A DNA stretch of 64,000 nucleotides from NCBI GenBank assembly GCA_965202585.1, contig OZ241831.1, positions 41,168,001 through 41,232,000 of the forward strand, given 5' to 3'. The translations under genes and the position numbers were made by a program. Under the pieces are notes generated by a model that ran no database searches, was not told the DNA's origin, and was given only the letters and a program-made list of their open reading frames with translations. Every line of letters starts with the position of its first letter. Position 1 is the stretch's first letter. This document shows positions 116-63,920 of this stretch, one piece after another. The stretch is from Thalia democratica. Taxonomy: Eukaryota.

Positions 116-323
116 CTGTGTATATGATTTGTGACAAACTTCACAGGTGAACGGTTTCACGCTGCTGTGAATGTGCTGATGTTGTTTCAAACCGCTCGAA
201 GTTGCAAATGTCTTTCCACACTCCGGACACGCGTGAGATCTCGCTCCGATGTGACGCTCCCGGATGTGTTTCTGAAGAGATGACGAATCGGTGAATGTCG
301 AATCACAATGCTCGCATTTGAAC
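116..323 (-). CDS. Copy A exon 4 (208 nt): zinc fingers equivalent to EVI1 ZF4, ZF5 and first half of ZF6
   Basis: Acceptor tttcag, donor CAG|gtatga, open frame; [19 protein letters not shown] signature of the EVI1 family. Confidence 0.95.
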
Positions 324-1181
324 CTGAAATATAAAATTTGGTTTACATGAATTTTAAAGCTTAATTTTCTAACAAAAAAAATAACAGTTGTTTAACATTA
401 TTCTGTATTTTTATTAACTTTCTCTGTATCATAACTAGTTTTTTTTTACCAATTTTAAAAGAAGTCAATGTTTATACTAAAGCTCATGTTAATTTCTTAT
501 TTTTGAAGTTTGTTATGTTACAAGATGTAAATTTATTTTAAATATGTGTAAAAAATATGTTTTTTACAACAAACAAAATTGTGATTTTTAAACTTTCAGT
601 ACTTGGAATTTTCAAATTTATTAAATACATGAAACCAAAACTTTACACAAATATATTTCTTTATACAATAATCCTAAAAGTGTAATTAAATTTACGTGTA
701 TGTATTGTTTTCACATACTTGTTTGTTTAAACTGAGCTTTTAACTTATAGCTAAACTGTTAAATAAACACACGTTTTAAAATGGCTGCTATCGATTAGTG
801 AGAATATAGTATTATCCAAAACTAGAATTAAAATGATTATTATTAAGATCAAACTTACTTGTTGATATTCGATTGAGGATTTTGCACTGCATTTTTTAAT
901 TGAAATGGTTGTTGAAGTAAAAACATTTCATTTTCTAAGAAAGATTTGTAAACTTTACTAAATTTAGTGGTTTACAAAACAAAAAGTAGGATTTTTTAAC
1001 AATAACTAAGAAAAATTTCATAAAACGTGTTCAAAATTACTTAAAAAAAATGTTTATGCTTGTTAAAAACACTGTCAGATGTTTTTACAAAATTTTTGCA
1101 GAACTATTTTTAACTATTTTAGTTCTATTTGTTTGCCTTTATAAACTGACACTTAACTTCATTACTCACTTAGGTTTACAT
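116..1181 (-). CDS. MECOM-like: Copy A (partial; 3' part lies before base 1) of EVI1/MECOM-PRDM16-like C2H2 zinc-finger gene: exons 1170-1181, 859-934, 116-323
   Basis: Three exons with AG/GT boundaries in consistent phase translate to ..[98 protein letters not shown]. Functional status unknown. Confidence 0.8.
859..934 (-). CDS. Copy A exon 3 (76 nt)
   Basis: ttcttag|...|gtaagt; one codon shorter than the 79-nt exon in B/C/D with the same phases; open frame; contains an in-frame ATG at 924-926. Confidence 0.8.
1170..1181 (-). CDS. Copy A exon 2: 12-nt microexon ATGTAAACCTAA
   Basis: ttacaag|12 nt|gtgagt; same length, phase and flanking intron conservation as B, C and D. Confidence 0.7.
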
Positions 1182-61600: not shown

Positions 61601-63920
61601 TAAATGCTTAAAAATCAACTTCCATATAGCTTTAAACATACTGTTTTAAAGTTTTTGTATATTTCGTATTTAAAAAAAAATAATTCATAATTATGAAAAA
61701 ATAGCAGTTTTAATTTTTTTTTTAGTTTTGTGTGAATACTGCTAATACTTTACTTAAATGCTGTCAAAGCAAATTTATTTGATGACTACAAAAAAGTTTA
61801 GTAGCCCTTTCACTTGATATTTACTTTGTGTCGTTTTCTATACAGAGAATACAAAGCTTAGCTAAAACTAAAAAGTAAGCAGTTTTTTTTTTATTATTTC
61901 GCATTTAAAGTCTTAATTCAATTTTAATTTTAAGTTAAAAAATAAATTTTAAGATATAATTTTTTTATACTAAAGATAAACAATGAATGTAATATTTTTT
62001 TTTTATCCAAATAAATTTATCTAATCAATAAAAAAATCTAAGTAACTTTTTTCGTCTCAAAATTTAATTTATAATAACATTTGAGCTACTAAAAAGTTTT
62101 TAATTCTGTGTTTTTATTTCTAACGCGGATAAAAATAATTGTGCACAAATTACGAGAAAGCTTTAGATACGTATTTTATAGTTTAAAAGCCTTATTTATT
62201 TTCTGCTAAAATAAAAAATAATATACAGTGATAAAAAAAAAAAAAATTTCGTATAATATGTTTGTAAAATAAATAAAGGTTTTTTTTTTTCAATGATATG
62301 AACAAAAAAAGTTTGAGGCTAATATGTGTTTGTCTATAGATTTTTTCATAGTTTTATATTAATTTCATATTTTTTTCTTCAAATTATTTATTATTACGTC
62401 ATACCTGTGTGTACGATTTGTGACAAACTTCACAGGTGAACGGTTTCACGCTGCTGTGAATGTGCTGATGTTGTTTCAAACCGCTTGAAGTTGCAAATGT
62501 CTTTCCACACTCCGGACACGCGTGAGATCTCGCTCCGATGTGACGCTCCCGGATGTGTTTCTGAAGAGATGACGAATCGCTGAATGTCGAATTACAATGC
62601 TCGCATCTGAACCTGAATGATATGTAGGTTTTTTTCATGATCGATGTTGGCGATTAAAAGTAAGTTGTATCAAAGAGGTTTTTGGTAAATTTTTGTGTTT
62701 TCAAACATTACTAGAACAGTGTGTTAATTTTTATATGAAGCATCAGAAAAAAAAACAGATTCAAAACTTGCACTTTGTGTATTTATGGTAATTTACCACT
62801 AATACAACCTTTATAACTTTAGAACGATTTTTCAACGTCTATAGATTATAAATTATAGTGTAAAGTGTTTATCTAAAGCTTCAACAAATATTTATTTTAA
62901 GTTGGATTAAAAGAATATTTTGTGATAAATAGATTAAAGATTATATAAGTTTGTGAAAATTCACAAAGTGCTTGCTTCCTAATAAAACGTTATTGTATGT
63001 AATTGGTAAATTTTGTGTTACAGTATTTTTTGATATTGTTAATATTTTACATTCTTATACTAACTATTTATATTAGTAAAATTTGTTTTTGCATAACGTT
63101 TTTTTTTGTTTTTGTATTAAGTATTGAAACTTATAAACAACTACATGTAATTTTAAAATGGCTGAATTCGATAAGTAAAAACATATAAATATCATATACT
63201 TATCATTTTTCTCGAGATAAGTTTGTAAATCAAAGTATTATATTGTTATTTTTTCTAAAACTAAAAAATTGTACTTACTTTTTAAAAGTGTTCAACTGGA
63301 ATTTTGGTCCAACAATTTTTGGTTGAAATGTATGTTGAACTGAAATAGCTTCTTTATCTAAAAAGTTTTTTTGTGGGTAAATAATAACCTGTAAGCTTTT
63401 ACAAAACTAATAATAAGCAAGCTTAAACAAACTGCTGCCAAGTTTTTAATATCTTTGTTTTTTACTTTCAGATTTTACAACAACCGAGACTTCTTAAACA
63501 AAAAGTAGTCTAAACTACTTATTTATTAAAGTTTTTTGATTTAATAGGCTTATTAAACTGACAATTAATTTCATTACTTACGTAGGTTTGTATCTAGTGA
63601 TTAAATTTACCAGTTTTTATGACAACGTAGAAGACCTATCAAAAAGTCAATTGCGCAATCGAAATTGTTACTAGTAAATGGTAAGAAACGATTAGTTATA
63701 AAAGTTGTATTTCAGTCAATCTAACTTTGTTTTTTTTCAATTATTTCTATCTATCTAATACTAAATAGGAAATCAAAACAATCGTATATGTATCTTGTGT
63801 TGGTTATTATTTTTAGTTACCTTTTTTCTTAATTTCAACTTCATGATTATTAGTTTCATAAGGTGTTTGATATTTTTGCATATTTTGCCAAGGAGCTACA
63901 TCTGCATATTTTGTTTCCAT
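58568..63920 (-). CDS. MECOM-like: Copy D: intact 7-exon PR-less EVI1/MECOM-PRDM16/Hamlet-like zinc-finger transcription factor, 688 aa
   Basis: Exons 63821-63920, 63582-63593, 63279-63357, 62405-62612, 61276-61438, 58971-60361 and 58568-58681 sum to 2067 nt with compatible phases; all seven fingers retain their zinc ligands. Confidence 0.92.
58971..60361 (-). CDS. Copy D exon 6 (1391 nt): spacer plus ZF8-9
   Basis: Lies within ORF 58959-60419; acceptor ttttcaag; donor AAA|gtaagt. Confidence 0.93.
60877..61125. promoter_or_regulatory. Element X in intron 5 of copy D
   Basis: Homologue of 17316-17560. Confidence 0.65.
61276..61438 (-). CDS. Copy D exon 5: ZF6 end and ZF7
   Basis: Lies within ORF 61271-61453; gagcag|...A|gttagt. 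Confidence 0.93.
61756..61885. other. Element Y in intron 4 of copy D
   Basis: Homologue of 18208-18335. Confidence 0.65.
62405..62612 (-). CDS. Copy D exon 4: ZF4-6
   Basis: Lies within ORF 62399-62638; attcag|...CAG|gtatga. Confidence 0.95.
63279..63357 (-). CDS. Copy D exon 3 (79 nt)
   Basis: ttttag|[26 protein letters not shown]|gtaagt. Confidence 0.82.
63582..63593 (-). CDS. Copy D exon 2: 12-nt microexon ATACAAACCTAC
   Basis: atcactag|12 nt|gtaagt. Confidence 0.72.
63821..63920 (-). CDS. Copy D exon 1 coding part
   Basis: AAAATGG start; [33 protein letters not shown]; donor G|gtaact; in-frame TAA 6 codons upstream. Confidence 0.8.

Follow-up and report, generated by a model that had tools for sequence, protein, structure and literature searches.

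The 64,000-nucleotide stretch of the Thalia democratica genome analysed here (assembly GCA_965202585.1, contig OZ241831.1, positions 41,168,001 to 41,232,000; "the window" throughout) is part of a tandem array of at least four copies of an EVI1/MECOM-type zinc-finger gene. We propose, with a probability of roughly 80%, that the tunicate orthologue of EVI1/MECOM/PRDM16/Hamlet lost its PR domain and zinc fingers 1-3 (ZF1-3) early and was tandemly duplicated here, and that among the four copies, A to D, B and D are likely functional and C is decaying. Judged from the sequences compared, the layout without PR and ZF1-3 appears to be an old tunicate trait, already present in sea-squirt cDNAs, and the local gene expansion alone would be new.

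The window is 21-28% G+C along its 64 kb, and about 23% (77% A+T) at the array locus. Its only long open reading frames (ORFs) are zinc-finger ones, all on the minus strand, and a regular-expression search for C2H2 fingers in six frames confined these to four clusters on that strand. Self-BLASTN resolved four related units, A-D, arranged head-to-tail in the same orientation. B (~13.1-20.6 kb) and D (~56.9-64.0 kb) align over ~7.5 kb at 73-75% identity, C aligns more weakly, and one 208-nt stretch is 92-97% identical across all four units. An earlier interpretation made from the letters alone (the sequence-only reading) had described four minus-strand paralogues with fingers matching EVI1 ZF4-7, plus ZF8-10 where visible, and the regular expression, self-BLASTN and tBLASTN agree in supporting it.

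Gene models were derived from stop-to-stop frames, alignment of the four upstream regions and direct reading of the junctions (E, exon):

Copy A, 5' part, 116-1512, minus strand: E1-like remnant 1408-1512, E2 1170-1181, E3 859-934 (76 nt), E4 116-323.
Copy B, complete, 14735-20531, minus strand: E1 20432-20531, E2 20176-20187, E3 19845-19923, E4 18901-19108, E5 17718-17880, E6 15155-16554, E7 14735-14848; all introns GT-AG.
Copy B, ZF5, 18964-18966, minus strand: TAT (Tyr) in place of the first zinc-binding His, a candidate change.
Copy C, 31785-37724, minus strand: E1 37631-37724, E2 37330-37341, E3 37085-37163, E4 35296-35503, E5 34263-34425, E6 32152-33501, E7 31785-31898.
Copy D, complete, 58568-63920, minus strand: E1 63821-63920, E2 63582-63593, E3 63279-63357, E4 62405-62612, E5 61276-61438, E6 58971-60361, E7 58568-58681.

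Each complete copy has seven exons, with splice sites predicted from DNA as AG/GT at every junction. E1 opens with ATG and runs for about 33 codons (100 nt; 94 nt in C), E2 is a 12-nt microexon and E3 is 79 nt; the 64 residues that they jointly specify (62 in C) lack the Cys/His spacing of a finger. E4 (208 nt) carries ZF4, ZF5 and half of ZF6, E5 (163 nt) the remaining ZF6 and ZF7, E6 (~1.4 kb) the linker and ZF8-9, and E7 ZF10 and 12 further residues. Because E1 ends after codon base 1 and E4 begins at codon base 3, both the microexon and the 79-nt exon are required, and a separate earlier remark on the microexon is supported by this joining of the frame from E1 to E4. The N-terminus had been described as short and unrelated. 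It is short, but it comes from three small exons (100/94, 12 and 79 nt) and not from one, and it may be weakly related to the N-terminus encoded by a relative's mRNA (P0126, described below). No interruption occurs in the spliced ORF of B (691 aa) or of D (688 aa), and all seven fingers of D are canonical. The three visible C-termini (B, C and D) all end HEC-x6-CHY-stop, 12 aa after ZF10. The Cys/His spacing of this ending, at 14735-14770, 31785-31820 and 58568-58603, could be that of an extra small metal-binding knuckle.

The fingers identify the family. With exon 6 of B, phmmer returned MECOM, PRDM16, hamlet and egl-43 on top, and the array groups with the PRDM3/16 family both by these matches and by falling in a tunicate clade among family members, in a tree composed of PRDM3/16 family members only, with no non-family outgroup. 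tBLASTN with MECOM/PRDM16/hamlet proteins and a side-by-side listing place the fingers as EVI1 ZF4-7 and ZF8-10, one-to-one with those of Xenopus MECOM and Lingula PRDM16 and with nearly identical recognition helices. The diagnostic ZF4-7, including the C2HC seventh finger, are found in B, C, D and, as far as visible, A, whose 3' half lies beyond the window start and whose E4 carries ZF4, ZF5 and the first half of ZF6. The ZF8-10 cluster is present in B, C and D, with a ZF9 Cys lost in C. The CtBP-binding motif PLDLS, sought by regular expression, is absent from B, C and D and present in Ciona, Phallusia, P0126 and Xenopus.

Vertebrate EVI1 binds GA(C/T)AAGA(T/C)AAGATAA through its ZF1-7 domain and GAAGATGAG through ZF8-10. 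Delwel and colleagues reportedly found in 1993 that fingers 4-7 are required for binding the former. The base-contacting residues are the same across all copies, and B and D probably share the GATA-like and GAAGATGAG-like target sites of vertebrate EVI1. Any division of labour among the copies would therefore come from their promoters or the fast-evolving linker, not from DNA specificity. The window itself contains four EVI1 sites against 1.2 expected, not above chance (3 of 100 shuffles reached four).

No sign of PR/SET or ZF1-3 coding sequence was found in the window. tBLASTN with five PR-containing family members against the 64 kb had no match beyond the exons already modelled at E<0.4. The PR+ZF1-3 regions of 26 family members were also made into a hidden Markov model (HMM). 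Applied unfiltered to all 3625 six-frame open stretches of at least 12 aa, the model matched only the known finger exons of the window, through its generic finger part; its PR part gave no match at E<10. The claim that the spacers hold no such coding sequence thus stands for both kinds of search. Since the window includes the whole of the spacer upstream of B and of that upstream of C, a PR or ZF1-3 exon for either would need to be spliced across the whole upstream gene.

The same reduced layout is found in other tunicates. Relatives were recovered by searching with a Ciona savignyi fragment: Ciona intestinalis Q1RPZ5 (912 aa; also NP_001071904 and BAE93290, which from the type of accession we take to derive from a cDNA submission), Phallusia mammillata A0A6F9DSR3 (850 aa), and P0126 (902 aa), encoded by locus L002, a 2953-nt intron-free contig from ocean sample JGI 3300019016. 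The P0126 ORF is uninterrupted, so we take the contig to be an mRNA, and a TAA in the same frame, two codons ahead of the ATG, indicates that the N-terminus is complete. All three proteins have 130-160 N-terminal residues without a Pfam domain and then lead directly into ZF4, which begins at residue 160 in Ciona, 158 in Phallusia and 133 in P0126. PR/SET gave no match at E<=1 in the 912-aa Ciona, Phallusia and P0126 proteins and none at E<=0.01 in the other Ciona isoforms of the cluster, including X1, which likewise opens with a short N-terminus followed by ZF4. The array has this Ciona-type layout: a short N-terminus, then ZF4, with no PR and no ZF1-3. A linker motif, (M/F)A(H/D)A(Q/A)(V/I)QC, is common to all the tunicate sequences and reads MAHAQVQC in the array copies. 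Three further searches added no relatives: a word-index search with the linker alone (none at E<=1e-5), a scan of JGI metagenomes with linker motifs, and phmmer with exon 6 of D, including ZF8-9, against 1.8 billion representatives, which was swamped by poly-zinc-finger proteins.

In a maximum-likelihood tree the tunicate clade is supported at 99/97, the window copies are monophyletic within it at 100/100, and P0126 is their sister at 95/91. This phylogeny upholds the earlier proposal of a lineage-specific tandem expansion. The companion idea of a minimal, two-DNA-binding-domain EVI1 fared less evenly: the copies do encode only two finger clusters, but the minimal form is older than the expansion and did not arise from it, because Ciona, Phallusia and L002 share the layout. 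We found no report of a MECOM-type expansion in salps in the literature searched. In the same tree, the Ciona savignyi fragment (P0077) groups with the pelagic sequences and not with C. intestinalis and Phallusia (P0196/P0172), a placement that could reflect two old tunicate paralogues or long-branch attraction. According to the survey by Vervoort et al. (PMC4760075), Ciona lost 6 of 11 ancestral Prdm subfamilies, and Prdm3/16 is scored as lost in rhabditine nematodes. These scores would be consistent with PR-based surveys that did not count PR-less descendants. The nematode score, set beside the EGL-43 protein of C. elegans, shows that surveys of this type can overlook family members poor in PR.

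Not every copy is intact. Only B and D are demonstrably so, and C and A carry lesions. C has all seven exons, E1-E3 (37085-37724) being located by a sensitive search behind a 1.6-kb intron, and it carries three lesions. The E5 donor reads ACA|TTAAGT against ACA|GTTAGT, with TT for GT. The frame of E6 (1350 nt) is broken near 32570-32580, where an 8-nt gap adjoins a run of seven A (A7). In ZF9, Phe replaces the second Cys (codon 32212-32214). We regard C as a probable recent pseudogene that is decaying, judging from these changes. In A, the E1 equivalent, aligned with B and D, reads ATG AAA GCT TAG, a stop at codon 4, and its donor has changed from GT to AT; E2-E4 remain open with AG/GT sites.

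A fifth exon-6 homologue came from a Tara Oceans DNA contig (L001, 1-1595). It has a premature TAA inside MAHAQVQC, which indicates that copies in the array's gene family do die. L001 is placed as sister to B+D (82/96), but an approximately unbiased test does not reject a grouping of the window copies by themselves (p=0.127). By eye, the last ~95 nt of L001 resemble its ZF9 region (~1330-1430) in inverted orientation, probably because of a chimera formed during assembly or amplification.

Divergence among the copies is ordered, and it differs between coding and non-coding DNA. Synonymous divergence (dS) in exon 6 is ~0.26 between B and D and ~0.70 between B and C. The oldest split is C against the other copies, and B and D are the youngest pair. 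Identity between B and D is 85-95% in exons versus 67-80% in introns, and between B and C 73% in exon 6 versus 50-63% in introns. The ratio of nonsynonymous to synonymous divergence (dN/dS, omega) between B and D is 0.57 for exon 6, compared with 0.13-0.24 for the finger exons. With changes polarised by C and L001, omega is ~0.25 on the terminal branch of B (p=4e-8) and ~0.51, significantly below 1, on C plus the stem. These counts fit a functional B, and probably D, and a C that was constrained until recently.

Could all of the copies, at least four, nevertheless be functional, divided among cell types or life-cycle stages, with the lesions in C and A being errors or bypassed? The C-or-stem omega just given would be in keeping with this, as would a frame break that is single in the 1350 nt of an A+T-rich exon and sits beside an A7, a TATA-like box conserved upstream of B, C and D, and linkers that diverge fast around unchanged fingers, which is the pattern expected with diverging regulation or partners. 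C, however, has three independent lesions, affecting a donor, the frame and a zinc ligand, A has lost both its donor and an open E1, and L001 has its premature TAA. We consider this account unlikely and retain a mixed array in which B and D are kept and C decays.

Exon 4, at the coordinates listed above for A, B, C and D, is the homogenised stretch of the array and does not follow the pattern of divergence in exon 6. It is 95-99% identical among the four copies, with a dS of 0.02-0.13 versus 0.26-0.70 in exon 6, and the introns flanking it are diverged. It is 48% G+C with 14-15 CpG in a 23% G+C locus, and its G+C at third codon positions (GC3) is 0.51; the remaining exons span 0.09-0.33, with 0.20-0.29 for the larger ones, exons 5-7. 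The equivalent of exon 4 in P0126 has a GC3 of 0.28 and is only 73-75% identical to that of the array. This pattern is likely the product of recurrent GC-biased gene conversion confined to that exon. Owing to such conversion, the intactness of exon 4 would be uninformative on whether A or C functions.

One could take the lesions further and regard the whole array as dead duplicates of a canonical single-copy gene elsewhere in the genome. The lesions in C, A and L001, the loss of the CtBP motif and C-terminal tail, the lack of an RNA match to B in the runs examined, and the presence in ocean samples of the mRNA of a more canonical relative (P0126) would all be compatible with this. Two ORFs of ~690 codons over seven exons, with all splice sites kept in stop-rich DNA of 23% G+C, would not be, nor would exons clearly better conserved than introns, or an omega well below 1 on the B branch. 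We judge the death of the whole array improbable.

The 5' ends bear on whether the loss of PR and ZF1-3 is real. An in-frame TAA lies upstream of the ATG by 13 codons in B, 15 in C and 5 in D. In D no AG lies between this TAA and the ATG; in B and C an AG is present in the short open stretch before the ATG. TATA-like octamers occur a little further upstream:

Copy D, 63979-63986, minus strand: TATA-like octamer TATAAATA, 66 nt upstream of the ATG.
Copies B (20587-20594) and C (37782-37789), minus strand: equivalents of the D octamer, by alignment.

In B, C and D alike, the octamer, TATAAATA or TATAAAAA, precedes the ATG by 63-66 nt, and this position is conserved. It is weak evidence for a candidate promoter element, the motif being common in DNA of 77% A+T. 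The statement that the ATGs of B and D are preceded by an in-frame stop and a TATA-like box proved correct, and C shows both too.

Vertebrate MECOM makes a long isoform from a distant promoter. With this precedent, PR and ZF1-3 exons might lie outside the window and be spliced on as a long, MDS1-EVI1-like isoform; only ~80 nt upstream of exon 1 of D are visible, and the AG before the ATG of B and C could serve as an acceptor. Yet neither the 11-kb spacer upstream of B nor the 21-kb one upstream of C contains PR or ZF1-3, leaving only splicing across whole genes, and in D the in-frame stop 5 codons before the ATG is followed by no AG. The ascidian cDNA, the RefSeq models and the complete mRNA of the relative are likewise all without PR and ZF1-3. 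A distant exon is thus a very improbable source of a longer protein, and an ancestral loss remains our preferred reading.

Mis-assembly, with alleles or haplotigs of a single gene passing for separate copies, might be feared in a marine species of a highly polymorphic kind in which many read contigs are only 90-99% alike. It is hardly credible here, since divergence between the copies amounts to 15-27% for exon 6 and 20-56% for introns, and the copies differ in intron length, lie in one orientation each with its own flanks, and include B-specific intron sequence reproduced exactly in two DNA samples.

Those two independent samples contain the exons and introns of B, including an identical 703-nt intron contig, so the B-specific sequence is not an assembly artefact. 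They also hint at a larger family. Contigs from DNA reads covering positions 17794 (exon 5) and 15259 number up to ten distinct ones per position in one run and six in the second, and summed read-contig depth, laid on B, is about 3-20 times as high in exons as in introns, a figure that is not a copy number. These exon contig counts and depths suggest family members beyond the four seen.

In the model that we propose, the loss of PR/SET and fingers 1-3 from the tunicate orthologue predates the separation of ascidians from this pelagic lineage. The gene left behind would have encoded fingers 4-7 and 8-10, joined by a long disordered linker and preceded by a short N-terminus. A unit of this gene and its 3' flank would then have been duplicated several times in this lineage. 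The B and D proteins are most likely sequence-specific DNA-binding transcription factors that use two finger clusters, as their sequences predict. Having no PR, CtBP motif or acidic tail, the array proteins would have to use other partners or simply occupy sites. The features that appear specific to this array, on present comparisons, are the tandem expansion, the loss of PLDLS and of the long C-terminal tail, and the homogenisation of exon 4.

Several points weigh against this model. Expression, splice sites and true 5' ends are predictions. Two runs that are possibly RNA gave only chance matches of 18-33 nt to B, and exact look-ups of the exon-6 ORFs of B and D returned no protein record. 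With ~80 nt visible upstream of its E1, D may have further 5' exons. If the assembly is correct, one zinc ligand of ZF5 in B is a Tyr. At position 18966 every read-derived contig in the two DNA samples reads CAT (His); these contigs may stem from the near-identical exon of other copies, which leaves the His-to-Tyr change of B unconfirmed, and the base could be an allele, an error of the consensus, or a variant peculiar to B that the assembler discarded. The frame break of C adjoins its A7 run and may stem from the assembly or from an allele. On the D branch omega is ~0.66 (p=0.065), not significantly below neutrality, and the NG86-type counts behind our omega values ignore the strong A+T mutation bias.

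The DNA around the copies carries traces of its own history. Blocks at 8607-13061, 24265-30676 and 47763-56727 recur 3' of B, C and D in the same order at 70-87% identity, and this recurrence implies that several kb of 3' flank were duplicated along with the gene. The blocks may be either conserved regulatory modules or shared repeats. Within the A-B spacer, 10663-11286 and 11292-11905 form a head-to-tail local duplication of ~620 nt at 79% identity. A weak, recurring tBLASTN match at 43399-43509, considered as a possible dead fifth copy, is treated as chance because whole-gene BLASTN against the spacers gave no supporting remnants. No tRNA genes or Rfam families were found in the 64-kb window.

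MECOM/PRDM16-type developmental transcription factors are normally present in one or two copies. The array would represent birth-and-death evolution, together with exon-restricted gene conversion, in a gene of this kind. In addition, the tunicate MECOM/PRDM16 orthologue appears to be constitutively without PR and ZF1-3 in its DNA, and we found no paper stating so. Tunicates would thus offer a natural experiment, having the EVI1-type half of an oncogene and stem-cell factor without the methyltransferase half. Neither point changes a general principle. It is tempting to speculate that the copies are stripped EVI1 derivatives, with both DNA-binding clusters retained and all known effector modules (PR, ZF1-3, CtBP motif, acidic tail) gone, that keep shared sites through conversion of exon 4, with linkers and promoters giving them separate partners or cell types. 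We hold this scenario to be doubtful; if true, selector or site-competing factors would form a small family found in salps alone, perhaps linked to the alternation of solitary and chain generations.

Comparison with known family members sets these features in context. The ascidian proteins are closest in layout, likewise without PR/SET and ZF1-3, with ZF4-7, a long linker carrying the shared motif and ZF8-10, and they fall in the same tunicate clade. They differ in keeping PLDLS and a C-terminal tail of 90-150 aa, both missing from the array proteins, and one such gene per species was recovered in the searches run, against at least four tandem copies here. P0126 shares the ZF7 and linker motifs, the lack of PR and ZF1-3 and a possible NFHLN match just before ZF4, but at 902 aa it keeps PLDLS and a longer tail, is encoded in 37% G+C, and its exon-4 equivalent is not GC-enriched.

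Beyond the tunicates, ZF4-7 and ZF8-10 are highly similar to those of vertebrate EVI1/MECOM and PRDM16, and the absence of PR mirrors the EVI1 isoform. Vertebrate EVI1, however, keeps ZF1-3, CtBP motifs and an acidic C-terminus, and its locus also makes a PR-containing isoform, whereas in the array ZF1-3, PR, the CtBP motif and the acidic C-terminus are absent from the DNA itself. C. elegans EGL-43 (P0112), a family member recovered by its finger clusters, is a very divergent relative with the longest branch in the tree, and is encoded by a single gene with no array.

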